From contig RQSC01000031.1 of the NCBI GenBank assembly GCA_013416795.1, forward strand, positions 147,173 to 211,172: a DNA stretch of 64,000 nt, read 5' to 3'. Positions 3,165 to 63,075 of this stretch are shown here, one piece after another. The notes under the pieces are model-generated. The model was not told where the DNA came from, searched no databases, and saw only the letters and a program-made list of their open reading frames with translations. Source of the stretch: Prasinococcaceae sp. CCMP 1430 (taxonomy: Eukaryota; Plantae; Prasinodermophyta). Every line of letters starts with the position of its first letter. The first letter of the stretch is position 1. The translations under genes were made by a program, and so were the position numbers.

Positions 3165-3871
3165 NNNNNNNNNNNNNNNNNNNNNNNNNNNNNNNNNNNN
3201 NNNNNNNNNNNNNNNNNNNNNNNNNNNNNNNNNNNNNNNNNNNNNNNNNNNNNNNNNNNNNNNNNNNNNNNNNNNNNNNNNNNNNNNNNNNNNNNNNNNN
3301 NNNNNNNNNNNNNNNNNNNNNNNNNNNNNNNNNNNNNNNNNNNNNNNNNNNNNNNNNNNNNNNNNNNNNNNNNNNNNNNNNNNNNNNNNNNNNNNNNNNN
3401 NNNNNNNNNNNNNNNNNNNNNNNNNNNNNNNNNNNNNNNNNNNNNNNNNNNNNNNNNNNNNNNNNNNNNNNNNNNNNNNNNNNNNNNNNNNNNNNNNNNN
3501 NNNNNNNNNNNNNNNNNNNNNNNNNNNNNNNNNNNNNNNNNNNNNNNNNNNNNNNNNNNNNNNNNNNNNNNNNNNNNNNNNNNNNNNNNNNNNNNNNNNN
3601 NNNNNNNNNNNNNNNNNNNNNNNNNNNNNNNNNNNNNNNNNNNNNNNNNNNNNNNNNNNNNNNNNNNNNNNNNNNNNNNNNNNNNNNNNNNNNNNNNNNN
3701 NNNNNNNNNNNNNNNNNNNNNNNNNNNNNNNNNNNNNNNNNNNNNNNNNNNNNNNNNNNNNNNNNNNNNNNNNNNNNNNNNNNNNNNNNNNNNNNNNNNN
3801 NNNNNNNNNNNNNNNNNNNNNNNNNNNNNNNNNNNNNNNNNNNNNNNNNNNNNNNNNNNNNNNNNNNNNNN
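3165..3871. other. Assembly gap (N-run); others at 6379-6632, 8217-8316, 13469-13997, 16272-16601, 34620-34801, 40575-41146
   Basis: N characters in the sequence, all flanked by extremely GC-rich gene 5' ends. Confidence 1.
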
Positions 3872-4044
3872 GCGCGCGCGCGGCGGCGCCGCCGCGCGAG
3901 CGCTCTCGCGCCACTCGGCGCCAGCGTCCCCTCGGCACCCCCGAGCCCCCCTCGAGCTCCCGAGGGCCGATCGCCGGCGCATCGCGACCGCCCGCCCCCT
4001 TCGCCCACACCGCTCGAGCCGCTTCCCTCTCCCCGGGAGCAGCT

Positions 4045-4618
4045 ATGGACAAGGTCGCGTGCTACCTCCTCGCAGCGGTCTCCCTCTTCCACGCGTACAC
4101 GCACCTCGCGGACCCGCTCGGCGCCGTCGAGCAGATGGTCGGCGCGTCGCCGCACAAGAGCGCGGCTGCGCTCGTGTCCCACTGCATCGCCATCATCGGG
4201 TGCTGCCACGCCTTCACAGGCACCGTGCTGCTCAGTGCGGCCAGCATGTCGGACGCCGCCCACCGCAAGTGCATCCTGGGTGCGCAGCGCAGCGCAGCCG
4301 CGTTGCGCTGCTGCGCAGCAGCGCAGCTGCGCTGTTCGCCCCCTCCCCAACGCGCAGGCGAATGCGTCGCAGCGCACGCGGAGCGCTGACGGCAGGATGC
4401 CGCCACCACCCGCGTTCCCTTTCTCTTTGCGCCAAACAGGCATCTTCGCCGTGCCTTTCACGCTACTCATCGGCCTCGTGCAGCTGTGGTACCCTGCAAC
4501 TGGCGTGGCGCCGACCGACTTCACGGCCATGCCCTTCCCGATCGTCTACGCCTACCTCGGCATTGCGGTGGCCGGCATCGCGCTCGCCGGCAAGAGCGCC
4601 AAGGGCAAGACCGCATGA
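4045..4618 (+). CDS. Small uncharacterised multi-pass membrane protein (about 137 aa)
   Basis: Exons 4045-4279 and 4440-4618 with a phase-1 GTGCGC...AAACAG intron that joins in frame (..KCILG IFAVPF..). About four hydrophobic segments; C-terminus KGKTA. Confidence 0.7.
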
Positions 4619-37230: not shown

Positions 37231-40200
37231 CTATCTGCGCATGGGATCGCCTCCGCTCGTGCCGTTCAATCCCATCTTCCCGCCGCCCTTGCTTGCTGCG
37301 CTGTTCACGTGCTGAGCGCCATTCGCCATCGCGCCATTCGCCATCGCGCCATTCGCCATCGCGCCATTCGCCATCGCGCCATTCGCCATCGCGCCATTCG
37401 CCATCGCGCCATTGGCCATGCCGTTCGGCTTGGCCACGGCAGCGCGAGCGCCCTCGCCTCCATGCCAGCTGCCGCCCATGCCGCCGTCGGCGCCCAAGAC
37501 GCCCGGCGCCGGAGAAGCGGACCGCCCCGAGGCGACCTTCTTCATGCAGGCACCCTTGCTGGCCCCGCCGTTGCCCGTTGCCGCACTCCCAAGCCCACCG
37601 CCGCCGCCGAAATTGGTCAGAGCAGCCGAGAGGGCAGCATTCAGGTTGTCGCGAGTTTGGCGCTTCCGAGTGCCTTCGTCCGAAGCCCTGGCTTCGCTGC
37701 CCAGCTCGGTTTGGCTGGACAGTCTCGAGAGCACGGGGGTGGTGTTGCCGCTGCCATTGCCCATCGCAGTGTTCACGGGCGGTGGGCGCTGCACCGAACC
37801 GTTCATCGCAGCAGCGCCATTGACGCCACCATTCGCGTGCCCGTTGGGAGGCGCCCCCATCGGCAAGTGCCCGTTGGAATGGGCAGCGGGGGCGGGCTGG
37901 CTCACCGTGCGAGCAACGGCCTGCGCTAGCGGCACCGTGCTGCCGAGCTTGGAATCAATCTCGCGACGAGGGCTCAGGCCAGGATCAGCAGCACCATTCT
38001 GCATCGCGTTTGGCTGCCCCGAAGTGCGTCGACCCTCCACGCGCACGGACTCGAGCCGGGAGGTCAGGTTCGCCATCGCTTGGGCATGAGCGCTCGTCAG
38101 CTCTCCCCTGCGGCGCTCGACACCCCCCACCCGCTCCCTACGACGTGCCTCGAGATCCATGAGCAGCTTCTCCCTCTCACGGGCGAACTCAGCCTCGATG
38201 GCCGACATCTCCGCAGCGAGCTCATCCATGCTCGCCTTGGTGTGCATCTCCAGGCTGGCCTGCTCCTCTAGAAGATGCTCCCTCGCATCAGCCTTCCTGC
38301 CAGAGGGCTCCGTGTGCGCGCGGGCCAATGGCGACGACGCAGGCACAGGCGTCGCTGTGGCCTTGGCCGGGGGTTCGGAGCTCTGGCGCGGGGCGTCCCA
38401 ATGGGACGCTGCCGCGGCGCTGGCATACGTAGCGGAATGCGGCTGCTGCAGCGCGTCCGTCGCCTGCGGCGCCGGCGAGCCGTTGGCGCTCGAAACGATG
38501 GAGGGCAAGACATTGTCCGACCGCGCCTTCGGCAGCGGGGATGTGGGCGCCGTCGCCGGCGCGGCCGCCGGCGCCGCGGTCTGTGAGGCTGCCGGCGCGG
38601 CCACGGGCGTCGCGATCGGCGAGGCCGCCGGCACTGCTGTCGGCACCGCAAGGCGCAGCCACCGGCGCGGCCGCGGCCGCGGGCGCCGGCGTGCCACTTT
38701 CGCCGGTGGCCTCCTCTTGTGCCACTTGCAGCGCATCCACCTCTTTCTGAATCTCCGTGGCAATGACAGCGATGTCGTCCGAGTTCAAAGAGAGCTCCGT
38801 CACCATCTCGCTTGCCACCTCTCCAGGCTTGTCCACATTGAGGTCGTAGTTGAAATTCACCTTGCGGCAGTGGCCATCGTGCGCGATTTTCAGCGTAAGT
38901 TTGTAGACGCCTTTCTCCATGACGCCGCGCACCCTGAAATCGCTCTTGTTGAGCGAGCTCCCACTGCGAGCAACTTGGGGTGGCTCCTCCGACGCATCGT
39001 TGTCGCTGCCGCTGCCCTCGGAGCGCGGGACGCCGCCCTTTGCGCCCGCGCCCTCAGGCTTGGTCGGAACAGATTCGTCCGCAGCCCCTTTGGCCGCGTG
39101 CACGGACGACACGGACGACACTTTGCTGACGCCATTGGAGCGAGCGCCTCCAGCAGCCGGCGCCGCGGCCGTGGAAGGCGCAGCCGCAGCCGATGGCGCG
39201 GGGGCGCTCGCGTCCGAGTCGACCTCCATGGACTCCTGGCGCGGCATTGCGGGCGGCGACGCTGAACGCGATCGTTGTTCCGCCGGCTTTGGAGGGCTGT
39301 GCCCCTCGCTGTCGGACCCGTCCGACCGCACGCCGTTCGACTCGGCCGATCGCGCGCTCTCCGTGGCCTGCTGGGCGCCCGACGCATCGCTAGGCGCGGG
39401 CCGCTCCTCCTGCGTCGGTGCCGGGCTCGGCGCCGAGGTCGGCGCCGGGCCCGGAGCGGCCTCCGGCTGGAGCGCAGGGACCTCGCTCGAGCGCGAGCTT
39501 ATCGACGTCACCGAGCCCTGCCTTGCCATGTCCTTCGAGGAGGAGGCCTGCCGTGCCATGTCCTTCGAGGAGGCCTGCCGCCCCATGTCCGCAACCTTGG
39601 CAGTGCTCGCGCTGTGCTTCAGGCCGCCCTCGGCCTTTTCCTGCTTGAAGAAGGGCGCGCTCAGAAGCTCCTGCGCGCTGGGGCGCTTGTGCGCCGGCAG
39701 CAGGCACATGCGGATGAGCTCACGCGTCTCCTCGTTCTTGATCTTCTTCAGCGCCCCGGGCATCTCCCGCTTGGAGACCTTGCGGTAGATCTGCGCCGGG
39801 TTCTCGCACTCGCTGTACGGGCACTCGTTGGTGATCAACTCCAGGAGGCACATGCCGAACGAGTAGATGTCCGCCTTCTCGTTGTACTCCTCCTCGTACA
39901 GCTCCGGCGCCATGAACTCCGGCGTGCCAAGCACAGAGTGCGCGGCTTGGGCGCGCAGCACGGTCGCCAGGCCCAGGTCGCCAATCTTCACCTCGCCCTG
40001 GTGGCCGTTGATGAAGATGTTGTCGCACTTCAGGTCGCGGTGGATGATCGGCGGCTCCTGCGAGTGGAGGTACAGCAGGCCCTTGAGGATCTGGCGGCCC
40101 CATCCGCGCACGGCCTTGACGTCGATGCGCTTGTGCTTCTTGCGGTACACGCGCAGCGACCCGCTCGTGAAGAACTCGGTCACAAAGTTGACGTCGCTGG

Positions 40201-45379: not shown

Positions 45380-47200
45380 ATGGTCGCGGGGTCGGAGGCG
45401 GCGTCTGAGATGGACGGCGAGCGCGAGGTGCTGGAGGAGGTTGTGAAGGTGCGGGCATGCGGCGCGTGGTTCGCGGTGGGGGGGCGAGGCGCGCGCAGAG
45501 GGGGCCTGTGCTGATGCTCGAGGCGCGCGGACTGCATGCGTTGCGGCCCGCTCCTGCAGGAGCTCAACCAGAAACTGCGCTCGTTGCACTTGCGCGACGA
45601 CGCGCTCGAGGAGCGCTTGGCGACTCTGGAGGCGGAGCTGAAGGCCGAGCGCGCGACGAGTACGAGGCTGCGCAGCGCGCTGGAGGCTGCTGGCGGGGGA
45701 GACGCTGCCGCCACAAGCGGCAGCGGTGGCGCCGAGCTCAGGGCGCCCGCACTGCTCGGTGCAGAGTGCCACCGGGGAGCACGATTCAGTGCTGCGGTCA
45801 TCGGCGTGCCTGCGGACTCGCCTGCAATCGAGCTCGGCCTCCTCGCCGCGCGAATCACCCCGGAGAACTTCGTCGGCCTGCGCGCCGTCCCCGAGCTGCC
45901 GCCTCAGCCTGCATCCCAGAGCAACTCGAACGCTGGCGCTGGGGCCAGCGCGCACGCGCGCGACTTCGCCTCCAGCAGCTTGGGCAAGGCGCTTCACCGC
46001 AGGTTGCCGTCGGGCGAGCTCGACCTCTTCGGCGGTGGGAGGGGCGGCGCGCAGTTCGTCGCGAGCGCCAGTGGCGGAATTGATCTCTCGCAGGGTGTCC
46101 CGCCCGGTGCAGCCGCGTTCGAAATCATGTGGAAGGACATGCTGGACGGCAGCACCTCGGCGGCGACGCCAACGCTGCAGCGCGCGACTATCGTTGCTAA
46201 CGCCGTGCTCGGTGCCGCCGTGCGGGCGAGAGTCAATGCGTGGTCAGAGGAGGCACTCGACAGGCTCACCGGATCGATTGGGGGGGGTGACGCTTTGGGA
46301 GCGGGTTTGGGAGCGGGTGGGAGCTCCAGCGCCGCGGCGGCTGCCGCCGTCTCGTCGCAGCAGCCGGGGTCGGCTGCTGGTGCCGACGCCGACGAGTGGG
46401 TCGACGTCGCCGACTCGAGCGGCGGACGGCAGTCGCAGCCACTGGCGCGTGCGGATGCCGTGGCTGCTGATGGCAGATCACCGGTCGACCCGCCTGACGA
46501 GGTCTGCGGGGTGCACGCCGACAAAAATGGCACGGCGCACGAGCGCGCGGGATCGCTCGAGCAGCCGCCGCCCCGTCAGATAGAGCGCGCGAACAGCCTG
46601 CTTGGCTCCACGGCAAGGCCGCTCGTGGCTGACCCGGGCCTCCCTGCCCCGAAGGGCGTCGAGTCGTCAGTGATTCTGTCGAAGTCCCACGCGGCCGCCC
46701 TGCGCGCGGCATTGCCGCCCGTGCTGCGGCTGTGCGAGGGGTGGACGCTGCTGTACTCGACCAAGCAACATGGCATCAGCCTGCAGACGCTGCTGCGTCG
46801 CAACACCGACAGCGGGGTGGGGTGCGGAAATAACACCGGCAAGGGCGCGGCGCTCACGGTGGTGCGCGATGCTGGCGGGGCGGCGTTCGGCTGCTTCACC
46901 TCGGAGCGGTGGCGCACAAACCAGCAGAGGTACTACGGCGACGGGCAGTCTTTCGTCTTCACGTTGCTGCCGCACCCCGTGGCCCACTTCTGGACGCGGC
47001 GAAACAACTACTTCCAACTGGCGGACGCGGAGTCGGTAGCGTGTGGGGGGGGCGGTGGCTGGGCGCTCTGGCTCGACGGCGAGCTCAGCCATGGCAACAG
47101 CGGCTATTGCGACACGTTCGGCAACGGGTGCCTGGCCTCAGCCGAGAGCTTCGAGATCGCGCACGTTGAGGTCTACGGCTTCGACGACTCGCTTTGCTAA
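45380..47200 (+). CDS. TLDc-domain (OXR1/NCOA7-like) protein with N-terminal coiled coil
   Basis: WTLLYSTKQHGISLQTL, VVRDAGGAAFG, YYGDGQSFVF, GGGGGWALWLDGEL..G.S..CDTFGN..L. Exons 45380-45448 and 45560-47200. Confidence 0.9.
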
Positions 47201-47355: not shown

Positions 47356-48214
47356 TTACAACCGTCCGCGCTTGACGAGCAGCTCGTAGTGGTTAGACCC
47401 GTTGTACAGGAGCTTGACCGTCGCTTTCTTGGCCGCGTACGAGGTCCCGTACTCCTGGATAGGCCTGAAGCCTTCCCCGAGCTTGTTGCTCTTCATGTAC
47501 ACCGTGATGGGCTGCTTGAGCATGCGCGAAATGACGAGCAGCTCAGCCTCGCCTCCCCAGAACGTGTTCTGCACAACGCGCTGGCAGTAGTTCGGCAGCG
47601 TGTCCTGCGTTGGCAACGTGCAGTGAGAAGGGTGGCCGGCGAGACAAGCAGAGGCGAACCCAATGGCCAGTGACGGCGGGATCGGTCAGTGGCGATGGCG
47701 AGCGAGCGGAGCGCGTGTGGTGGCAGGGAGAGGCGTGCGGCACCAGACCCAGGCGCACCAGCGAGTCTCACTGTGGAGAGCGGCTCACCTCTGACTTGAT
47801 GGCCATGAGCGCCTCCGGGTATTTCTCGCGGCGCTCGGCGCTCGCGCAGATCGTCTCGGCCACAGCCATGCGCAGCAGGTCGGCCTGCTTCTCCTCGTCG
47901 CTGCTGAAGAGCTTCTTGCCCTTGACTAGCGCGAGGCCCTGCACGATAGCCCGAAACATGCAGCGCCCATCGCCCTTGATGGAGACGATTCGCAGCGTCT
48001 CGCGCTTCGCTTTTGCCGGCACCGCCTCCGTCGCCTCCTCCGCCCTTGCGATCGCCGCGAGCGCCGCGCCGCGCGGCGCCGAGCGCCGCACGGCGCCCGA
48101 GGCTGTCGCCCGGCGGCGCGACGGCCGCCCGCGGCGTCGCCGCCATTGCTGCTGCCTCGCCCATCTCGCGCTCCGCGCCGAGCCCCCCTCCGCTTGGTCC
48201 CGGACGTCCGCGCC
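47356..48214 (-). CDS. OTU-domain deubiquitinase (plant OTU3-like)
   Basis: IKGDGRCMFRA (catalytic D/C), WGGEAELL, LLYNGSNHYELL (catalytic H). Intron 47788-47605. The start codon is not resolved. Confidence 0.9.
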
Positions 48215-48990
48215 CTATCGACCCCGCACCGCCAAGCGACCTGAGACGCCGAGGCGACTTGCGACCGCGGTGTGACGCGCCCCCACTGTCGCCTGACCCT
48301 CCCTTCACCCCCCCACCCCACCCCACCCCCCTCGTGGGAGTGTGTGTGTTGGGCTACGAGGCCCAGCGCGCGCGCTCGCGGGGTTTTGTTCCAGATCGCG
48401 CGGTGGCCAGGCAGGAGAGCGCGCCGCCGACCGCAGCCGATCCCCAGATGTTCGAAAGAGCATCCGAAAACCGGGCTTGGTGCATTGGATGAATCCGCGG
48501 CTGACCCGGGGAAGACCGCGCCCCACCAGATCTACCACCATGATGGTACCGAGCTCACCCCCCATCCGCGCGTGCGGAACGAACCTAAAGTCGCGCGCCC
48601 GCCCACCACGCGCGCAGCGAAGCCCACTGACGATGACGTCATATTTCCCGACGGGCGATCACGCTGGTGCTGAAGAATAGACCTGCTCCGTGCTCACGAT
48701 CGACGCGTGGAATCCCGGAATCCGAACGCCACGATGCGCACCGACAAAAAAGGGCACATCACATGACACGTGTGAGATGTGCGTGTGCGCGTAAATACAA
48801 ACCGGGGGGGGGGGAGAGCAGTCGGGGCGGAACATGTAAGGGCAGGCGGTTACGCGCGCGCGCGCGCGCGCTCTCGCTTCACATCGCGGCGGGAGTGCGC
48901 GCTGGGTGGGCGCTGGGCGTGCGCGAGGCACAGCTGCGGCAAGCGTTCGCCCCAGTTTCGCGCGGCGGGCGCACCGTGGGTGGCGGCGGC

Positions 48991-51474
48991 ATGGGCACGT
49001 CGGGCGCGTCGAGCGGCTCGGGAGGCTCGCGCCGCAGCCGCAAGCCCCGCAAGTCAGCCGCGGCCGACAGCAAGGGCGTCGCGAAGCCCGTGCGCGTGCA
49101 CATTCCGAAGAGCGCGCATGGCTTTCGCTTCCACGCGGAGGAGCTGGCGGTCCTTGAGGCCTCCTTCCAGTCCAACGAGGGCGCGACGCCGCTGCGCGCG
49201 CACTGCTTGGCCATGGTTGCGGGCTTCAACAATGCCGAGCCCAGGCACTCGTCCAAGGTATTCATCGACTGGAAGCAGATAAAGAATTGGTTCGAGAACC
49301 GCAGGCAGAAGGCCAAACGCGAGAGGCGCAAGCGCGAGGAGCAGGCTCGCGCGGCGGGCGGCGGGGATGCGTCGGGCGTCCCGAGCGGTGACCAGGAGGC
49401 CGAGGGCTGGATGATGAACGCGCTCATGGAGCTTGTGCCGACCCCCCCGTCGACGTTCACGTCCTTCGGAACGGCCACCACCAACGGCCCGGGCTCAGTC
49501 GCGAGCGGCGCCGTCGCAGGCGCACTTGCAGGTGGCGGAGGAAGCGTCACAGGAGCGCCGCCGCCCATGCTGAGCGCCACGCGAATGGCGCGCTCCATGC
49601 GCCGTGAGGCCCTGCGCGACTACGACACCGCCTGGGAGCGATTGGAGCGCGCCGCGGGCGAACTGCAACACCAGGAGAGCCTCGGAGTCTCAGCTGGGTC
49701 GGGCGAGAGCTCCGGGGGGGCTGGCCTGTTTCGGCTGGGATCGTTGCACTCAAATAGTAGCAACGGGGCCAGGCAGACGGGCTCGCCTTCGCTGGCGCAC
49801 GACGCTGATTTGCCCCTGCCTCCGTCGACGCTGGCCATGGCGCCGCCCAAGCTTGGCAACCTCGATCTGCCGAGCTTCGGCATGACCGCAGGTCTCAGCA
49901 CGCTTGGGTCGGGAGCCTTCACGCTCGGCGGGGGAAGCGGGGGAAGTGGCATTTCGGGGGGACTGGATGCGAGCGCCGCGGAAGCGGCTGTGGCGGCGGC
50001 GGCTGCCGCCGCGGTCGCTGCGGCGGCGGTCGATGCAGACGCCGTGGGCGCTGAGCTTGGTGGCGTGCTGCCTCCCAAGCTTGCTACGCTTAACATACCC
50101 TCCCTCACAGCTGACGAGACGGTCACGGCCGCTGTCAACAACGCTGTGGCTGCTCTGAACCGGGACGGTGGCGGCGGCAGCGACAACCCCTCCCATGCGC
50201 TCGCGTCGCCTCCCACTTTGCTGGGGATGGGGCGCAGGAGTTTGTCGCTGCCCAAGCAAGGCAACGAGGCGGACGTGTCGGGCAACGGGCGGACGCAGTT
50301 GCCCAGCGGTGTTCTTCTCATGGGCGACGCGCGACGGCAAGGGACCGGAGACGCCGGGACGAGAATTCTGATGCCGCCCGAGCCGGCTGTCAAGACCATG
50401 GGCAAGGGCATGCACGTGTCGTTTGCAGGGATGCTCCCTCCATCGGATGGTGTGGGCCTGTCGAAAAAGCTGGCGAGCGAGGTCGAGGCTTGGCGGAAAG
50501 AGCGCGCACCCCTGCTCGACGCCATGTCCGCTCTGTCGCAACGCCCCGAGCACAATCCGGCCACAACAGAGGAGCTTACGTCGCTTCTCGAGCTCTCGCG
50601 CGCGCAGATGGTGCGGCTATACGGTCTCAAAGAGCGCATCGCACGGGAGGAGGCCGCGGGCGTGGCCTCAGGCGGTGGCGATCGCGACGGGCGTGGCCTC
50701 ACCAAGGGTGAACGCATCAAGGAAGCAGATATATGGCAGGCGGGCTCGTCGGGCTTGCTGTTCATCGGCGACCTCATGGCCGACGAGCTCTTCCTTGAGA
50801 TACAGAGCGTCGTCGGACCTGAGCTGGGGGAGGCGCACCGCGAGCGAATAGCCAAGTTGCAGCGTATAGCGGTCGCCGGCGAGCGAGCTCTCAACGATGG
50901 GCTGAAGGCGCTCCACATGGCTGTGATCAATATCTTCGATCGGCCAGATGGGGACCTGCACTCGACCGCGGCGGACCTCGCCCAACGCCAGGCAACCACC
51001 GAGGCAGCGAGCGTCGCGCAGACGGTGGTAGACCTGGATGACGCTGAGTTCAAGGAGCTTCAGGCGCAGGTGTCGGAGCGCGGTGGGCTGGAGCTGCTCG
51101 TTCGCGCGGCCAACACGCTGCGCCTGCGTGTGGTCGACCAGCTGATGGCACTACTGACGCCGCTGCAGGCAATCAAGGTGGAGCTGGCGTGCGCCGACGT
51201 GGGCAACGTGCAGAGGGTCATCTCTGCCATCGTGCAGGCGAGGCTCCACCCTTCGACGCTCTCTCCGAAAGACACACAGATGCTCTCGGCGTGCCTGCGC
51301 CTGGACTCCACGCGCCCTACCAATGAGCGCACGCTCAAGACTTCGACCATCGTGAAGTTTGGCTGGGGCAAGACTGGTTCCGGGCTTAGCCGTCTGGCAC
51401 TGGCGGCACAGGCGGCGGTTGAGGCATTGCATGCGAACAATCCAGACAATCCGAACAGATATTTGAATAGCTAG
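48991..51474 (+). CDS. Homeodomain (SHH/SAWADEE-HD type) + DOG1/TGA-C-like domain protein, 827 aa, intronless
   Basis: The homeodomain spans about 49108-49330 (FRF..EEL..LEA.F...KVFIDWKQIKNWFENRR). The C-terminal helical region at about 50470-51243 carries the TGA/DOG1 pattern (LLFIGDL; ERALNDGLKAL; LELLVRAANTLRLRVVDQLMALLTPLQA). Confidence 0.85.
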   Translation: MGTSGASSGSGGSRRSRKPRKSAAADSKGVAKPVRVHIPKSAHGFRFHAEELAVLEASFQSNEGATPLRAHCLAMVAGFNNAEPRHSSKVFIDWKQIKNWFENRRQKAKRERRKREEQARAAGGGDASGVPSGDQEAEGWMMNALMELVPTPPSTFTSFGTATTNGPGSVASGAVAGALAGGGGSVTGAPPPMLSATRMARSMRREALRDYDTAWERLERAAGELQHQESLGVSAGSGESSGGAGLFRLGSLHSNSSNGARQTGSPSLAHDADLPLPPSTLAMAPPKLGNLDLPSFGMTAGLSTLGSGAFTLGGGSGGSGISGGLDASAAEAAVAAAAAAAVAAAAVDADAVGAELGGVLPPKLATLNIPSLTADETVTAAVNNAVAALNRDGGGGSDNPSHALASPPTLLGMGRRSLSLPKQGNEADVSGNGRTQLPSGVLLMGDARRQGTGDAGTRILMPPEPAVKTMGKGMHVSFAGMLPPSDGVGLSKKLASEVEAWRKERAPLLDAMSALSQRPEHNPATTEELTSLLELSRAQMVRLYGLKERIAREEAAGVASGGGDRDGRGLTKGERIKEADIWQAGSSGLLFIGDLMADELFLEIQSVVGPELGEAHRERIAKLQRIAVAGERALNDGLKALHMAVINIFDRPDGDLHSTAADLAQRQATTEAASVAQTVVDLDDAEFKELQAQVSERGGLELLVRAANTLRLRVVDQLMALLTPLQAIKVELACADVGNVQRVISAIVQARLHPSTLSPKDTQMLSACLRLDSTRPTNERTLKTSTIVKFGWGKTGSGLSRLALAAQAAVEALHANNPDNPNRYLNS

Positions 51475-51566
51475 CGCTCACACGGCATTTAGACTCTATA
51501 ATCTCACTTCGCTTATCGCCTGTAGTGTTGAGTGCCGCAACACTGCGCGCTGAGGCCTTGGGGCTG

Positions 51567-52463
51567 TCATGTGCGCTCGTATACGTACACGTGCTCCTCG
51601 CGCTTCATTTCGTCGGGCGTGAGCTCGAGCTCATCGCCGGGAAAGTGCTCGGTGCGCGCGTAACGATCGACGTGCGACAGACGCAAGCCCACCTCGCCAA
51701 CACGCGAAATGTCGCGGCTGACAGTGCGCTCAAATGTGGCAAAAAAGGCGTCGTCGTGCGCGAGGATGTCCGTGGAACCGGCCGGCGCAAAGCTGCTTCC
51801 CTCTGGGTCGGGCGACCGCAGCACAATGCACATCACGCCGTCGCTGTTGCGCAAAGCCAGTTCGGCGAGCGACCAGGCGCCCGTGTCCCGTGAGGCTGTC
51901 AGCTTCTTCATCGCCATCAAAATCTACAACGACGCTCTCCTAAATTCCGATAGGAAGTAGTCCTGTGTGAGGTCATCAATTTCTATTTGCCACGCTAGAG
52001 CGATCCTTTGCACGTCGCCCGCGCGCTGAGTTAGTTCGACTCACCTCAGCAAATGGCTTGCGATGCTGACGAGGCGGTCCGTGCCTGGGCTCAGGCTGGC
52101 GCCGCTTCGCGACTCGGCACTCGAAGCTTCGCTGCCCTGCTCGGTGCCGCGGCAGCTCCCGTCCATAAATGGAACGAGGGCCTCGGGACACGCCACCAGC
52201 GCAAAGTCGTACTTCCTTCCTCCGACTTGACGTCCGAGATACTCGCGGTCGTAGTCGCGCGCTGGGCGCACGTCCGCGTGGAAGACGCTGCCGAAGTACG
52301 GGTGCTCCTCGCCGGTGACGGCGGACCCCGTGGTAGGGATCACTACAGCACTCTGGGAGCCGTCGGTGAGCCCCGCTTCCACGAGTGCCTTTGCTACTGC
52401 GTGCACGAGCTCGACGTCACACACTGCCAGGACGCGCGGTGCCGCCTCGGCGACTCGCTTCAT
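51567..52463 (-). CDS. Hypothetical protein with degenerate class-I methyltransferase-like (Rossmann) pattern
   Basis: Exons 52463-52045 and 51843-51567 join in phase (CTGAG|GTGAGT...CAACAG|C) to give KYDFALVAC...LVSIASHLLSDGVMCIVLR. No GxGxG motif. Confidence 0.5.
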
Positions 52464-53188
52464 TTTTATGAAGGGCAGTAAGGAGTGCACCCCCAAAGTG
52501 GCGGAGTTGGCCGCTGGATGGAGTCGGCGCGCGGTCTCATTGCTGCGCGCCGCTATCCGGCGTGGTGCCCCAAGCCTTTTCCGCGCCACGTTGAAATACG
52601 CGCTGCCCTGCTCTCGCGGGCGCCAGGCGGAGGCGGTGACGACCGGCAGCACCTGTGCCACCCTCATGTGTGCGGAGTGATGAGTCGCTGTGACTGGGGC
52701 TACTGGCGGCCACCGTCGCCAACGCGACAGTTCGCAGGCGGCTGCTGACGCCGTGCCGCGCGCCGCGCGCGCGCGATGTGCCGCCACCGCTCGGGTCCAG
52801 ACAGCTAGCAATGGCCCGCAGCGCATCGGCGATGACTGGAAAAAAAAGAAAAAAAAAGATGATTCTCTTTCGCTTTTATTTTTCCATGGATGCGAACGAT
52901 TCCGATGCCGCATCACACTGCGCGCGGCCCGCAGCGCGCAGCAGGGCAGGCAGTCGACGGCGAGGTGGGGGTGGGGGTGGGGGGGCAGACCTCCGCTGCG
53001 CAAGTAAATCTCCACGCGCAGCACGGCCGGCTGCGCGCGAGCTAGGGCCTGTTGGCCCTCCCGCCTGCTGGTGCTTGTGCAAGGCACCAGCGGCAGTGAC
53101 GGCTGGTCGGCATCGCGTTGCAGCGGCGTCACCGTACCCAACACCCCCTCCCATTCACGAGCGCGCATTTTCGTGGTTCGACTCGACG

Positions 53189-54524: not shown

Positions 54525-54714
54525 TGTCAAGATTTCGCCCGGGCTTGCAATCCTGAACCCGAATCCGTAGTCCGCCTGCGGCCCCGGCGGCAGCCGCCGC
54601 CGCGGGGTGCCACAAGCGCCCCCCCCCGCCCCCTCCACCCCCCCCCCTCCCTCCCGCCACCCGGCACGCTCGCCTCGGTTGCATGGGCGGGTTGTGGCGG
54701 GAGGGGCCGGTGCG

Positions 54715-57700
54715 ATGCCAGGCGGCGGCTTTGGCAAGGGCATAGGCGGGAGCTACAAGGGTGGCGGCTTTGGCAAGGGCGTTGGCGGGAGCTACAAGGG
54801 CGGCGGCTTTGGGAAGGGCGTCGGCGGCAGATATGTGAAGGGCAGCGCCAGCGGGTATGGCAAGAGCGCTGGCGGGAGCGGAGGTGGTGGCGGCGCGAAG
54901 GCGTTTGCCGGCAGTGGTCCGAGCGCGGGCATGCTCACGGGGTACATCAAGCAGGCGTCGACGCTCGAGGCGCTCTTCGAGACCTTCTCGAAGCATGCGG
55001 CGCGCTTCAACCACGTCCACTTTGCGGCATGCTGGAGCGCTCTCGGCCGCCTGGCAAGGGGCGCGGGTAGGTCGCAGGCGTGGACGGAGGAGCATCGCGA
55101 GGCGCTGCGCGTGCTGGTGAGGCGCACGTCGAGCGCCGTGGACGCACCCGTGGCCGGCTGCGAGTTCCGCGCACGCGAGCTGGCCACCACAGCGCATGGC
55201 GCGGCCAAGAGCGGCGCCAGCGCAGGCGAGCTGATGGCGGCGCTCGCCCGCGGAGCAGAGCGCCGCGTTGGGGACTGCAACGCACAGGAGATGGCCAACC
55301 TCGCCTACGCGTTCGCCAAGGCACAACACGAGGCGCCTGAGCTTCTCGATGCCATTGCAGAGCACGCGAGACCGCGCCTGGGCGAGTTCAAGGCCCAGGA
55401 GCTATCCAATCTGGCATGGGCTTACGCGACGGCCAAGCGTGCCGCGCCAGCACTCCTCGACGCGATCGCCGAGCAAGCGCGGCCGCGCCTGCGCGAGTTC
55501 AATGAGCAGGCGCTCTCGAATACGCTCTGGGCGTACGCCAGTGCCAAGCACGAGGCGCCCGCGCTCTTCGATGCCATCGCAGAGCAGACAATTGCGCGCC
55601 CAAGCGAGCTCACTCCGCAGGCGCTGTCGACGATTGCATGGGCGTGCGCGAGTGCCAAGCATTGCCCTGCGCAGCTCCTCGATGCCATCGCCAAGGAGGC
55701 CAGGCCGCGGCTGCGCGAGTTCAGTGCTCAACAGCTTTCCAACTCGGTGTGGGCCTTTGCAAAGGCAGACCACGCGGACCCCGAGCTATATGCCGCACTC
55801 GCGGCGGCGGTCGCGCGGCGCCTGGGCGATTTCAACCCGCAGGACCTCGCCAGCACCGCCATGGCATTCGCCAAGGCGTGTCACGTGGACGCACAGCTCT
55901 TCGCTTCGCTAGCGCGCGCCGCCGAGACACGCGCGGACGAGTCGAACCTGCAGGACCTCGTCAGTACGGCTTGGGCATTCGCCAAAGTCGGCCAATTCGA
56001 TACCGGGCTGTACGCCGCGCTGTCGCGCTCGCTCATCGGCCGCCGGCTCGACGAGCTGGACGCGCCACACATAGCCAACGTCGCCTGGGCCTTCTCGAAA
56101 GCGGCGCAGACCCCAGACGTGGCCCTGTTTGCTGCACTGGCGCGCACGGCCACCCATCGCGTTGGCGATTTCGGCGCTCAAGACCTCGCGACCATCGCCT
56201 GGTCTTTCGCGAATGCCGACCAGCTGGAAACGCGACTGTTCGCAGCGCTCGCCAGGTCGGCCGAGCGGCTGCTTGATAAATTCTCCGCGGAGGACCGTGA
56301 CAACGCTGAATGGGCTTTCGTCCGGGCCGGACAGCAGCGCATCGTCAAGCTGCTGCGACAGCAGAAAGCACGTGGCGCATGCGGCCCAACTTCGCTCGCC
56401 AGAGCCCCTGACGTGGACGTGGGGAAGTGCGGCCGCATCGTTGTGGCGGGCGGCGGCATCGGCGGCGCGGCGGCTGCCGTGGCGCTGCAGAATAAAGGCT
56501 TCGACGTGGTTGTGCTCGAAGGCGACGCCAGCTTCGACGCACGCAAGCAGGGCTACGGCCTGACCATTCAGCAGCAGGAGGCGACGCAGGCGTTGGGAAT
56601 AAGCCTGGCGCAGGACGACGCGCCGTCAACCTCACACTACACCTTCGACGCGGCTGGCAACATCCTCGGCTTTTTTGGTGAGGCCTTTGGTAGCGCCAGC
56701 AAGGATCGGCGCGAGTGCGAGAATTCTGGGCGCTTCGTGCACATCCCAAGGCAGGTGCTGCGCTGCAGGCTGTTGGAGCGGGTTCGCCCGGGGACCATCC
56801 GGTGGGGCAGCAAACTCAAGAGCTTCAAGTGCTGGAGCGAAGATGATGGCGGGGGCGAAAACAACGAAAACGGAGTGACCGTCACCCTGGCAGACGGCAC
56901 CACCCTCGATGCCGCCTTGCTGGTGGGGAGCGATGGTATTTTTTCCACCGTGCGAAAGCAGCTCGACCTCAAAGGGGACCGTCTTAACTACGTCGGCCTC
57001 ATCGTTGTTCTAGGTATCGTACCCACTGAGTGTGGCAGCGCCGGTGACGACAGCGAGGGGCGCCAGGACGGCCACGCCCCGGCCATGGTTTCCCCCCTGA
57101 CGCATAGGCGCATCTTCGAGACAGTCGACGGCGCCGCACGCATCTACGCCATGCCGTTCACGACTACATCGACCATGTGGCAGCTGTCCTTTCCCTTCCC
57201 CGAGAAGCAGGCACGCGCACTGGCAAAGGATACGGCGGCCCTCAAGGACGAGATCCTGCGGCGGTGCGGCTCGTGGCACGCCCCTATCCCTGACCTGCTG
57301 CGCTCAACGCCGTTGGATGGCATGGCTGGCTACCCTGTGTACGACCGCCAACTGCTAGAGCCGCATGTTCTCAGGGAACCGGAGGGGCCGGCCACTCAGC
57401 TGAGACCGCAGCGCCGTGCCACGCTCATTGGTGACGCCGCGCATCCGATGACGCCCTTCAAGGCGCAGGGTGCGAACCAGGCCCTCAGTGACGCCGTGCT
57501 GCTCGCTGACAGCCTAGTGGAGAGCATTCAGCGTCACGGCCCCAGCGCAGGCATGGACGCCGCCCTCCCTCTCTTCGAGAAGGAGATGCTCCGTCGATCG
57601 TCGCGGATGGTGGTCGGGTCGCGCGAGAAGGCCAAGGAGCTACACAGCCCCTTGGCACTCCAGCCCGCGCGAAAGGTCCAGCGGGACACGTTGGGCGGCC

Positions 57701-58245
57701 TCGACATGCAGAAGTCCATCGGCATCCTGCTGGCCAAGGGCATCGGTGCCCACAGCGCGGCTGATCCCTTGGGCTTGGACGCCGTTGTGGAGGCGGCGAT
57801 TTCAAGCCTGAGGCGCAAGAGGTCAGTGCCCGCCACGGCGGTGGCCGATGTGGAGAAGGCAGGGTCGGTGAGAGCAGCGACCAAGAAGCGCAGGGCGAAC
57901 AACTTGGCAGACCAGGGTGAGGAGGGCGGCGGGGAGCCGGCTGATGACGGCAAGGCCAACGATGACGGCGGCTTCAAGTGGCGCCGGACTATGCGCAAGC
58001 ACCTCGATGCGGCCGGGGACAACGGAGTGCGGCGCAAAGATCTGCGCAAGGCGACGCTGCGCGACTTCCAGCGGCACCTCTCAAAGTCAAAAAAGGACGG
58101 CGTGTCCGCAGACGTCGCCCGCAAGCGTTGGATGTTCGCCGAGCCTGCCGAGCTCGACGCGCTCTTCCGCAGCCACCTCGCCCAGGCCGAGGCGGCCGGG
58201 CGCCTCAGCACGCGGGGTAAGATGGTGTACCGCGCGCGCACGTGA
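54715..58245 (+). CDS. Multidomain protein: GK/aromatic repeats + HPR/OPR-like helical repeats + FAD-dependent monooxygenase + basic LYAR-like C-terminal domain (1176 aa, intronless)
   Basis: (GGGFGKGVGGSYK) about x3; about 11 37-aa repeats F.xQ.L.N..WA.A; IVVAGGGIGG, LVGSDG, LIGDAAHPMTPFKAQGANQA; C-terminal FKWRRTMRKHL..GVRRKDLRK. Confidence 0.88.
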   Translation: MPGGGFGKGIGGSYKGGGFGKGVGGSYKGGGFGKGVGGRYVKGSASGYGKSAGGSGGGGGAKAFAGSGPSAGMLTGYIKQASTLEALFETFSKHAARFNHVHFAACWSALGRLARGAGRSQAWTEEHREALRVLVRRTSSAVDAPVAGCEFRARELATTAHGAAKSGASAGELMAALARGAERRVGDCNAQEMANLAYAFAKAQHEAPELLDAIAEHARPRLGEFKAQELSNLAWAYATAKRAAPALLDAIAEQARPRLREFNEQALSNTLWAYASAKHEAPALFDAIAEQTIARPSELTPQALSTIAWACASAKHCPAQLLDAIAKEARPRLREFSAQQLSNSVWAFAKADHADPELYAALAAAVARRLGDFNPQDLASTAMAFAKACHVDAQLFASLARAAETRADESNLQDLVSTAWAFAKVGQFDTGLYAALSRSLIGRRLDELDAPHIANVAWAFSKAAQTPDVALFAALARTATHRVGDFGAQDLATIAWSFANADQLETRLFAALARSAERLLDKFSAEDRDNAEWAFVRAGQQRIVKLLRQQKARGACGPTSLARAPDVDVGKCGRIVVAGGGIGGAAAAVALQNKGFDVVVLEGDASFDARKQGYGLTIQQQEATQALGISLAQDDAPSTSHYTFDAAGNILGFFGEAFGSASKDRRECENSGRFVHIPRQVLRCRLLERVRPGTIRWGSKLKSFKCWSEDDGGGENNENGVTVTLADGTTLDAALLVGSDGIFSTVRKQLDLKGDRLNYVGLIVVLGIVPTECGSAGDDSEGRQDGHAPAMVSPLTHRRIFETVDGAARIYAMPFTTTSTMWQLSFPFPEKQARALAKDTAALKDEILRRCGSWHAPIPDLLRSTPLDGMAGYPVYDRQLLEPHVLREPEGPATQLRPQRRATLIGDAAHPMTPFKAQGANQALSDAVLLADSLVESIQRHGPSAGMDAALPLFEKEMLRRSSRMVVGSREKAKELHSPLALQPARKVQRDTLGGLDMQKSIGILLAKGIGAHSAADPLGLDAVVEAAISSLRRKRSVPATAVADVEKAGSVRAATKKRRANNLADQGEEGGGEPADDGKANDDGGFKWRRTMRKHLDAAGDNGVRRKDLRKATLRDFQRHLSKSKKDGVSADVARKRWMFAEPAELDALFRSHLAQAEAAGRLSTRGKMVYRART

Positions 58246-61204: not shown

Positions 61205-62797
61205 TTACATGTGATCCAAGGGCTGGTCTGGCCAGTCGGGCAGGGCGTTGGCCGCCTCCATCACAATCTCCACGAGCTTGCGAGTGAGCTCAGGCACCTT
61301 GGCCGGTGCCGGCGGATACGTCTTTGGTGGGTACCGCCCCGAGAATCGCCGCTTGTCGAAGCGCCACTTGCCAACCTTGCCCGGCGTAAAGACGCCCTGC
61401 TCGTCGTAGTCACACCCGTATGTGTAGTGCAGGATGTAGAAGTCGCTGATGTGCTTGTCCCACGGCGGCTGCGCCATGAAACTGGGGTAGAGCTTGTGGC
61501 GTATTCCCGAGTTCCACGCCGCGAACGAGTAGCCGTACATCTCGAGCACCCAGCCCCACGCCTTGTCGGCCTCCGGATCGTGCTTGATGGCTACGCTAAT
61601 GTTGTGCCACTTGGGCGCGACGATCTCGAGGTCGCCCTTGGCGATCATCGCTGGCGAATTGCCGATCGGGTCTATCTGCTTCATCTCCTTGGCGGTGATA
61701 GGCTTATCGAGAAACCTGTTGGTGATGTCCGGTTCCTTCTGCGGCGTGATGTAGAAGAACGGAAATGCTGCGGGCGTGTGCTCACCGGCCATCAGGTTGG
61801 GAATGGGCCGCAGCCAGAGGTGATCGGGTTCTGACATCATCAAGTACTTCTCGGGGTACTTGTGCCCGAAGTTCTTCAGCCACTGGTGGATGGCGTTTGG
61901 GCGGCTCAGCACGACGAAACCCTTGGTCATGTGCGGCGGCAGTGGGTCGACAACGTCGGTCGGAATCTCGTCCATCAGGCTGTCCTCGCGTCCACCGTGC
62001 AGGATGCGTGTGAAGCCGCCCATGTCCTCTGAGCCGGGCATCGCCTTGACCTTCTTCCATTGGTAGTAATGGACGCGCATCTGCCACTGGTTGTACACCT
62101 TGTCATCTGCCGTCGTGATGGTCCGATACACCTTGTCGTGCACGAAAGGCACGATTGCAGCCGCCTCTTCGGGGAATTGCGTAAGCCCGCTCGTCCAGTC
62201 GGAGTTGTCGCCCTTGGACATGACGCCCGCTGCGTCCGCGCGCGCGTTGTGCTTGAGCCAGCATTCGCCAAACTTCGAGCGACCGTGGTTGCAGCCCTCC
62301 GCCCGGCCGCAGAATACCCACGTGTTGCATCGCTCGACCTTGTCTGTCGGCTTGTGCGCGGCCGCTTGCCGCGAGCAGGAATTGCAGCACTCTTCTGCAC
62401 TGGCCACCATGTTTGTGCTGCCCCACGTCACCAGCTCACCGTTGTACTCGATCCGCTCGCCGCTGCAGGTGGTGGCGCCCGACTGTGCCAGCTTCGAGGA
62501 CGAGGAAGGAGAAGGAACAAGCTTGCTGACCACAGCGCTGGCGGCCGCGACTTGGCCGCGCGGCTTTCCTCGCTGCGTGCTCGCCGCGCCCTCGCTGATT
62601 CCCTGTGGATCGATCCCCACAGCGTGCTCGAGCGCGACCATACTCGTAAACGCCGCGTCCTCAGCCTGCTGCACGCGCGACATCACCGACGAGGACCTCG
62701 ACACCACCACCAAGAGCACAAGCACGACCATCGCTATTGCGCTGCACACAGCCGCGCCGTGCAGGCCGCGCCGCCTGCGCCTCCCATCGTCGGCCAT
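61205..62797 (-). CDS. Hydroxyproline O-arabinosyltransferase (HPAT)-like type II membrane protein with PAN/Apple domain
   Basis: N-terminal TM, then ECCNSC..CNTWVFC..ECWLK (PAN/Apple-like), then YNQWQMRV.Y, MGGFTRILH, MSEPDH, FPFFYI, IGNSP, WGWVLEMYGY. Confidence 0.9.
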   Translation of the reverse strand: MADDGRRRRRGLHGAAVCSAIAMVVLVLLVVVSRSSSVMSRVQQAEDAAFTSMVALEHAVGIDPQGISEGAASTQRGKPRGQVAAASAVVSKLVPSPSSSSKLAQSGATTCSGERIEYNGELVTWGSTNMVASAEECCNSCSRQAAAHKPTDKVERCNTWVFCGRAEGCNHGRSKFGECWLKHNARADAAGVMSKGDNSDWTSGLTQFPEEAAAIVPFVHDKVYRTITTADDKVYNQWQMRVHYYQWKKVKAMPGSEDMGGFTRILHGGREDSLMDEIPTDVVDPLPPHMTKGFVVLSRPNAIHQWLKNFGHKYPEKYLMMSEPDHLWLRPIPNLMAGEHTPAAFPFFYITPQKEPDITNRFLDKPITAKEMKQIDPIGNSPAMIAKGDLEIVAPKWHNISVAIKHDPEADKAWGWVLEMYGYSFAAWNSGIRHKLYPSFMAQPPWDKHISDFYILHYTYGCDYDEQGVFTPGKVGKWRFDKRRFSGRYPPKTYPPAPAKVPELTRKLVEIVMEAANALPDWPDQPLDHM

Positions 62798-63075
62798 GGC
62801 GCCCACGCCCGGCGCGCTGCAGACGGCGTGGCGCCACCCCGGCCGATCCGCCCACTCTCCGCCGCCACCGCCGCGTCGTTGCCACCGATGGCCACGCAGC
62901 GCACGCTCGCGCCCACCGTGCGCGTGAGGTCCGACAGCGCCACCGCGTGCCCCCCTCCACCCCCGCCCGTCGCGATGNTCGGCGCGCCACGCGCCTGACG
63001 CGGCGGCGGGCGCGAAAGGGCACGCGCAGTGGGTGGCGACGGCGGCCAGCGACGGCGGCGGCGGCGGCGGCAACG

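Follow-up and report, generated by a model that had tools for sequence, protein, structure and literature searches.

TGA factors and DOG1 have central regulatory roles in immunity, redox signalling, and seed dormancy in plants. To our knowledge, the domain common to both has been traced back no further than the streptophyte algae; we know of it in no organisms other than land plants and the algae most closely related to them, and of no case there in which it is joined to a homeodomain. Here we describe a gene in a 64-kb stretch of contig RQSC01000031.1 (the window), whose product, the window protein, carries an atypical homeodomain at amino acids (aa) 40–112, followed by a 375-residue linker and a helical C-terminal domain of the DOG1/TGA type. 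A second protein, P0006 (762 aa), which is encoded on a 4.7-kb Tara Oceans contig (L005), is colinear with it and has the homeodomain, the linker, and the C-terminal domain in one frame.

According to one published study, TGA factors are absent from chlorophytes and restricted to streptophytes, having arisen in charophycean algae (PMC6508501). In TGA3, the domain forms a bundle of helices around palmitic acid, mediates dimerisation, and makes contact with NPR1; DOG1 binds heme (PMC9360754). Among plant homeodomain proteins, the SAWADEE class is defined by two features: an insertion of 10 residues that separates helix 2 from helix 3, longer than any other in the set surveyed, and the SAWADEE domain, a region of 130–140 aa with Cys/His residues that lies C-terminal to the homeodomain (PMC2775110). 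This class was described from land plants only, with no member in Chlamydomonas or Ostreococcus, and shorter insertions at the same site occur in the homeodomains of the WOX and HD-ZIP III classes (PMC2775110). In the same survey, Ostreococcus lucimarinus and O. tauri are each listed with one “uncharacterized” non-TALE homeobox gene (Mukherjee et al., 2009, Table 2; PMC2775110).

From sequence comparison and structural modelling, we propose that the locus constitutes a single gene encoding a nuclear transcription factor composed of a homeodomain, a disordered linker, and a bundle homologous to the DOG1/TGA domain, and we give this reading a probability of about 0.7. Two domains with homology to described families lie in one open reading frame (ORF), which is conserved as a single frame in two species under purifying selection. 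An original prediction, made from the DNA letters and their translations, had described the gene as an SHH-type homeodomain fused to a DOG1/TGA-C domain; the fusion itself was borne out and is conserved in P0006, and the two parts of the label are considered below.

The homeodomain and the C-terminal bundle

That the C-terminal domain is of the DOG1/TGA type is well supported by a sequence profile and by the predicted fold. The profile (A3), built from a three-species alignment and searched against 177,635 distinct PDB sequences, matched TGA7 (8gyz, E 3.5e-5) and TGA3 (7tae, E 9.4e-5; 7tac, E 4.9e-4), with the next match at E 0.92, and the identical three entries had been returned by an earlier alignment (A2). 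The segments aligned with TGA follow in the order N-terminal, middle, C-terminal: the start of the domain aligns with the region of the F..EY..W..E motif, in the middle LFIGDLMADE falls on WIGGFRPSE and GERALNDG on AEDALSQG, and in the last long helix AANTLR..QL..LLTP.QA falls on ADHLRQQTLQQM..ILTTRQ. A single-sequence phmmer search of the C-terminus against the PDB found no match, and the Pfam family DOG1 (PF14144) matched neither the window protein nor P0006. In a more distant relative, however, represented by metagenome contig L002 (positions 327–851), DOG1 was the best Pfam family (E 5.3e-5, 23.8 bits, profile positions 2–73 of 77). The last exon of this relative alone ranked TGA3/TGA7 first against the PDB (E 0.1), and the N-terminal half of L002 alone gave nothing but weak matches to serum albumin.

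The fold was predicted with AlphaFold2 from a five-row algal alignment, without templates and without plant sequences; a model from the single sequence, with a predicted local distance difference test (pLDDT) score of 48.7, was discarded. The retained model has a mean pLDDT of 55.9 and a predicted template-modelling (TM) score of 0.51, with core helices at 70–88 and two inserted low-confidence loops at about aa 558–590 and 641–698. Compared with the PDB by Foldseek, it placed TGA7 or TGA3 chains at all of ranks 1–6 (probability 1.00, TM 0.63–0.71 normalised to the target), and rank 7 had a probability of 0.18 and a TM below 0.2. VIA-align superposed it on TGA3 (7tac_C) with Z 15.4 and a root mean square deviation of 3.6 Å over 197 of 209 residues, and on TGA7 (8gyz) with Z 15.3, the next chain standing at Z 8.0. 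A search independent of Foldseek, covering 48,161 representatives, again ranked TGA7 (Z 15.1) and TGA3 (Z 14.7) first, ahead of a two-helix hairpin at Z 9.0.

The alignment tool itself cautions that helical models can, and often do, reach a Z of about 14 against unrelated chains by chance, and the low mean confidence of the model, the sub-threshold DOG1 score, and a sequence identity to TGA of about 19% would all be compatible with an unrelated helical bundle whose likeness to TGA/DOG1 stems from convergence or model bias. We regard this as very unlikely, because the superpositions span 194–198 residues, or 92–94% of the TGA domain, lie 6–7 Z units above the next chain, and single out the same family as the sequence profile, in which only TGA3 and TGA7 fell below E 0.9 and the motifs listed above are colinear; sequence and fold thus agree independently. 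The original prediction had assigned the C-terminus to the DOG1 domain of TGA bZIPs rather than to SAWADEE. The strings on which it leaned (LLFIGD, GERALNDGLKAL, and LELLVRAANTLRLRVVDQLMALLTPLQA) are all present in the translation, and profile and fold, including the Foldseek comparison with TGA3, uphold the assignment; the Pfam DOG1 profile, which it had proposed as a check, matched the L002 relative below threshold and the window protein not at all.

Beyond the end of the TGA domain, all three species share a family-specific tail that TGAs lack, made up of FGWG[KR][TS]GSGLSR and a following helix. No Pfam family matched this tail (VKFGWGKTGSGLSRLALAAQAAVEAL), and the confidence of the model is low there. 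A resemblance of FGWGKTGSG to a Walker A loop was considered and ruled out, as the spacing is wrong and the Lys is replaced by Arg in L002.

At the other end of the protein, position 1 of the homeodomain corresponds to aa 40 (nt 49108) and position 60 to aa 112 (nt 49326). When excised as an 87-aa piece, it scores 28.1 bits (E 1.8e-6) against the Pfam homeodomain profile PF00046, above the gathering threshold of 22.9 bits. The full-length proteins reach 18.1 bits (window protein) and 21.5 bits (P0006) because an insertion splits the match. The excised piece aligns with Engrailed-2 (3zob) through helices 1–3; the alignment is interrupted once, by a gap of 13 residues that separates helices 2 and 3 and whose exact placement within NNAEPRHSSKVFIDWK is arbitrary. 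The residues F8, L16, F20, W48, F49, N51, and R53 are retained, and WFENRR falls on WFQNKR of Engrailed-2, which puts a Glu at position 50; a Gly at position 5 is also atypical. Judged from its sequence, Glu50 predicts an odd DNA specificity or a weak base contact. These results agree with the original description in its placement of the homeodomain (49108–49330, against 49108–49326 as computed), its quoted strings (FRFHAEELAVLEA and CLAMVAGFNNAEPRHSSKVFIDWKQIKNWFENRR, both found in the translation), the 13-residue insertion ahead of the recognition helix, and the unusual Glu50, and the profile score confirms the homeodomain as such.

The label “SHH-type” for this homeodomain is not established. 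The long insertion sits at the site that is diagnostic for the SAWADEE class (10 residues there, 13 here), and the whole stretch is unchanged between the window protein and P0006, that is, invariant between two algal species. Both observations speak for a history in which the homeodomain truly belongs to the SAWADEE/SHH class and an ancestral SHH-type homeodomain bore a DOG1 domain that was later swapped for SAWADEE. This history appears unlikely, however, since no SAWADEE family occurs among the Pfam matches up to E 10 in either the window protein or P0006, and neither Chlamydomonas nor Ostreococcus yielded a member of the class (PMC2775110). Moreover, the insertions in WOX and HD-ZIP III indicate that the helix 2/3 site is prone to repeated insertion.

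One reading frame in two species

The listed ORF extends from 48667 to 51474 on the forward strand, with the first well-placed ATG, in good context (GGCGGCATGG), at 48991; it contains neither N runs nor internal stops. In a window with a GC content of about 0.63–0.70, GC at third codon positions (GC3) in this frame is 0.70–0.90 across 48991 to 51390 and drops past the stop codon. An antisense ORF of 477 aa (49620–51053) has the same wobble positions, so that GC3 alone cannot pick the strand. The homology lies on the sense side and the antisense product matched no Pfam family, and therefore the sense strand was taken as coding and the antisense ORF was ruled out as a gene. Ahead of the homeodomain, the N-terminal arm is alignable with P0006 only over its final approximately six residues; its basic run RRSRKPRK is possibly a nuclear localisation signal or a DNA-contacting arm, to judge from composition.

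Relatives of the gene come from Tara Oceans and other metagenomes. A word-based homolog search with the full-length protein was swamped by low-complexity words and returned only the near-identical P0001, which was also the sole return when the search was limited to aa 485–820; with the homeodomain in a 470-aa context, nine candidates were listed and none scored. P0001 is a 635-aa call on metagenome contig L001, which is 98.7% identical to window positions 49187–52857. An exhaustive phmmer search of 1.84 billion representatives with the C-terminal 348 aa found three real clusters, all of them metagenome fragments; a further match (P0004, 3619 aa, E 2e-4) was set aside as low-complexity or due to chance. 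P0006 was found by cluster look-up, and a scan of JGI metagenomes by alignment added one locus of a third, more distant species already found by the other searches. Exact-sequence look-ups returned no record for the window protein or for the neighbouring TLDc protein. By these searches, the homeodomain–DOG1 family is very rare.

The window protein and P0006 have diverged to a synonymous distance (dS) of about 1, and the frame from homeodomain to stop has stayed open in both. The homeodomain, with its whole insertion, is nearly identical (about 90%), with a ratio of non-synonymous to synonymous substitution (dN/dS) of 0.12, and the C-terminal domain is about 75% identical with a dN/dS of 0.23; both domains are thus under purifying selection in one frame in two species. 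The linker is strongly diverged (dN/dS 0.48, counted over alignable codons only): of 20 indel blocks in the entire alignment, about 18, all in frame, lie in the linker or at its edges. Peptide islands are nevertheless kept throughout, namely WMMxALxEL...FTSFGT (aa 140–164), RxMRRxAxRDxDxAW..ERAAG (aa 198–226), and VSFAxMLPP just ahead of the C-terminal domain. No Pfam family matched the linker, which is probably disordered, and the idea that the helix at aa 198–226 is a degenerate bZIP was rejected, as it has neither the N-x7-R signature nor a Pfam match.

The linker contains two copies of a 13-residue motif, PP[KR]L..L.[LI]PS.., each of which is retained in P0006. Its sequence makes it a candidate for a short linear docking motif.

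Three independent assemblies (the window, L001, and L005) contain the arrangement. Within the ORF, L001 differs from the window by nine synonymous and four non-synonymous changes, the latter comprising three missense changes and one in-frame stop (GGA to TGA) at codon 184, at which the gene caller split the locus into products of 117 and 635 aa. This change suggests an alternative in which two proteins are made: a homeodomain-only product that ends in the linker, and a DOG1-like product that is initiated from an internal Met (M193, for example) and would act like the stand-alone DOG1 “microproteins” of land plants. This could come about by splicing or alternative starts in every strain, or only as a polymorphism among strains. 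We consider this alternative improbable, given that the frames of the window and of the Tara ortholog are open across the whole linker despite the many indel blocks, that conserved islands stand on either side of codon 184, and that this codon sits in a 14-residue Gly/Ala run which P0006 lacks, with a second single-nucleotide polymorphism 8 nt upstream, in a metagenome assembly. The TGA may accordingly have arisen in assembly, or it may mark a rare allele that is null or split. Its reading as selenocysteine was ruled out, there being no supporting evidence and the Gly run not being conserved.

If real, the TGA of L001 would constitute a natural variant in which the homeodomain and the DOG1-like domain are separated.

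The third species has a GC content of 47% and introns, and is represented by contigs L002, L003, and L006, which supply the C-terminal part only, at 31–44% identity to the window protein. In L002, introns were placed at 853–929 and 1205–1288, guided by GT..AG boundaries and by similarity to the window protein. The three contigs belong to three separate ENA assemblies and begin at the identical base, apparently within an intron (..ttgctgtgcag|TGACC); a break upstream of this start is common to every assembly of this species.

Near the contig edge (L005:1–45), the called start of P0006 is a GTG with an in-frame stop 10 codons upstream and no ATG between. The real first exon probably lies upstream of the end of L005, unless the edge of that contig is faulty.

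Several of these observations weigh against a single nuclear transcription factor. As to the frame, the GC-47% species is known from the C-terminal part only, the TGA at codon 184 of L001 would part the two domains if real, and upstream of the GTG start and the preceding stop of P0006 only 39 nt of contig remain. As to the domains, Glu50 and Gly5 are unusual in a DNA-contacting homeodomain, the DOG1 score of the L002 relative stays below the gathering threshold of 27 bits, the window protein and P0006 do not match PF14144 at all, and the structural model has a mean pLDDT of just 55.9, with poorly predicted loops and tail. We nevertheless favour one gene with two domains, since its frame and both of its domains are conserved between the window and P0006.

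Coordinates and neighbouring genes

The features of the gene and its surroundings are collected in Table 1. The intron of the OTU cysteine-protease gene shows that this genome uses introns, though the 2.5-kb homeodomain gene needs none. The hydroxyproline O-arabinosyltransferase family, which has a member near the end of the window, is typical of the green lineage.

Table 1. Features of the homeodomain–DOG1 gene and its neighbours, in window positions.
Feature	Position	Strand	Basis or remark
Whole coding sequence	48991–51474	+	ORF list and translation; 827 codons plus stop; frame open without intron
N-terminal arm, Ser/Gly/Arg/Lys-rich (aa 1–39)	48991–49107	+	Composition, basic runs; includes RRSRKPRK
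Atypical homeodomain (aa 40–112)	49108–49326	+	Pfam PF00046, Engrailed-2 (3zob) alignment, conservation in P0006
13-residue insertion separating helices 2 and 3, inside NNAEPRHSSKVFIDWK	49231–49275 (approximate)	+	Engrailed-2 alignment
Ala/Gly/Ser/Pro-rich linker (aa 113–487)	49327–50451	+	Two-species alignment; no Pfam family
GGA to TGA in strain L001 (codon 184)	49540 (L001 position 354)	+	Comparison with window
Linker motif copy 1, PPKLGNLDLPSFG (aa 285–297)	49843–49881	+	Pattern match; P0006 counterpart PPRLGALNLPSFG
Linker motif copy 2, PPKLATLNIPSLT (aa 361–373)	50071–50109	+	Pattern match; P0006 counterpart PPRLAQLDIPSLT
DOG1/TGA-C-type helical domain (aa 488–786)	50452–51348	+	Profile A3 against PDB, AlphaFold model, Foldseek, VIA-align
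Family-specific C-terminal motif and helix, VKFGWGKTGSGLSRLALAAQAAVEAL (aa 787–815)	51349–51435	+	Three-species conservation
TLDc protein	45536–47197	+	Neighbour
OTU cysteine-protease gene, intron of about 150 nt	47356–48091	-	Immediately upstream of, and divergent from, the homeodomain gene
Unassigned ORF	52041–53168	-	Neighbour
FAST-like/FAD-monooxygenase ORF	54607–58242	+	Neighbour
Hydroxyproline O-arabinosyltransferase	61205–63073	-	E 4e-117

Elsewhere in the window, a 111-nt tandem repeat (55327–55727, 3.6 copies, 69% matches) lies within the FAST-kinase-like/FAD-monooxygenase ORF, and a near-perfect 15-nt tandem repeat, GCGCCATTCGCCATC, spans 37316–37419 with 6.9 copies. Apparent low-GC blocks at about 3166–4500, 12–14 kb, and 40–42 kb are N runs, that is, assembly gaps, none of which falls in the homeodomain gene; the overlapping multi-frame ORFs listed in these blocks are artefacts.

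Proposed function and relation to described regulators

By analogy with TGA factors, the protein would act in the nucleus, bind DNA, dimerise, and bind a ligand or partner. The N-terminal atypical homeodomain would contact the DNA, and the long disordered linker would bear short conserved docking motifs (the PP[KR]L..L.[LI]PS.. repeats, WMM.AL.EL, and VSFA.MLPP). The C-terminal bundle might, like that of TGA, dimerise, enclose a lipid, and dock cofactors; it could in this way pair two homeodomains and/or couple the homeodomain to a small hydrophobic ligand or a partner protein, and DNA binding or activation would thereby answer to a signal. Such a scheme would follow the logic of TGA factors, with a homeodomain replacing the bZIP.

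The combination appears to be new, while its parts are known. In keeping with the original statement that no such protein had been described, a literature search for homeodomain and DOG1 combined, algae included, found no paper, and neither the word-based searches nor phmmer against the 1.84 billion representatives found an annotated protein resembling either half of the gene. If the host is indeed not a streptophyte, the DOG1-type domain also occupies a new phyletic position. The original prediction further held that the gene may bear on the origin of both land-plant families. This is reasonable for the DOG1 half, given the reported absence of TGA factors from chlorophytes (PMC6508501), whereas for the SHH half it is speculation.

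The presence in a marine green alga of a DOG1-type fold attached to a homeodomain instead of a bZIP would mean that the domain is older than the TGA family and a portable module serving different DNA-binding domains; the DOG1/TGA module of plant regulators is thus probably older and was more freely recombined than thought. The gene would also provide a single-copy, unicellular system in which to ask for the base role of the domain, be it dimerisation, the sensing of lipid or heme, or partner docking. Should the host not be a chlorophyte, or should the gene have been transferred, the evolutionary point weakens and the new architecture stands. A bolder history, which we offer as a long shot, would place the origin of the DOG1/TGA-type domain before chlorophytes and streptophytes separated, with a homeodomain as its first partner. 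That homeodomain, with its long helix 2/3 insertion, would be the algal forerunner of the SHH homeodomain, and TGA, stand-alone DOG1, and SHH would all derive by domain exchange from a homeodomain–DOG1 ancestor that survives only in a few marine picoalgae.

Among the described systems, the “uncharacterized” non-TALE gene of Ostreococcus, compared by its description only, resembles the present one in being a green-algal homeodomain gene outside the 14 plant classes, and could be a distant relative. SHH1 and SHH2, compared by the published class definition, likewise have an atypical homeodomain in which a long insertion separates helix 2 from helix 3 (10 residues in the class, 13 here), whereas the window protein is without a SAWADEE domain. 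With DOG1 and DOG1-like proteins (PF14144), the gene has the domain family in common, as the best Pfam match of the L002 relative indicates. Unlike the window protein, stand-alone DOG1 proteins are without a DNA-binding domain, and unlike them it gives no PF14144 match.

The most extensive comparison is with the TGA factors (group D bZIP proteins; Arabidopsis TGA3, 7tac, 7tad, and 7tae; TGA7, 8gyz). Here the DNA-binding part differs: the window protein has a homeodomain, and no bZIP family occurs among its Pfam matches up to E 10. It also has the linker of about 375 residues, the two long loops in the bundle, and the conserved FGWGKTGSGLSR tail, and the NPR1-contact motif of TGA3 around EPLTD is not kept, its place being taken by GPELGEA. 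Nonetheless, both possess a C-terminal helical domain of about 210 core residues, and the model of the window protein superposes, as a prediction, on the solved TGA3/TGA7 domain, a fold of five long and three short helices. Both likewise place a DNA-binding domain first, then a flexible region, and then the C-terminal DOG1-type domain.

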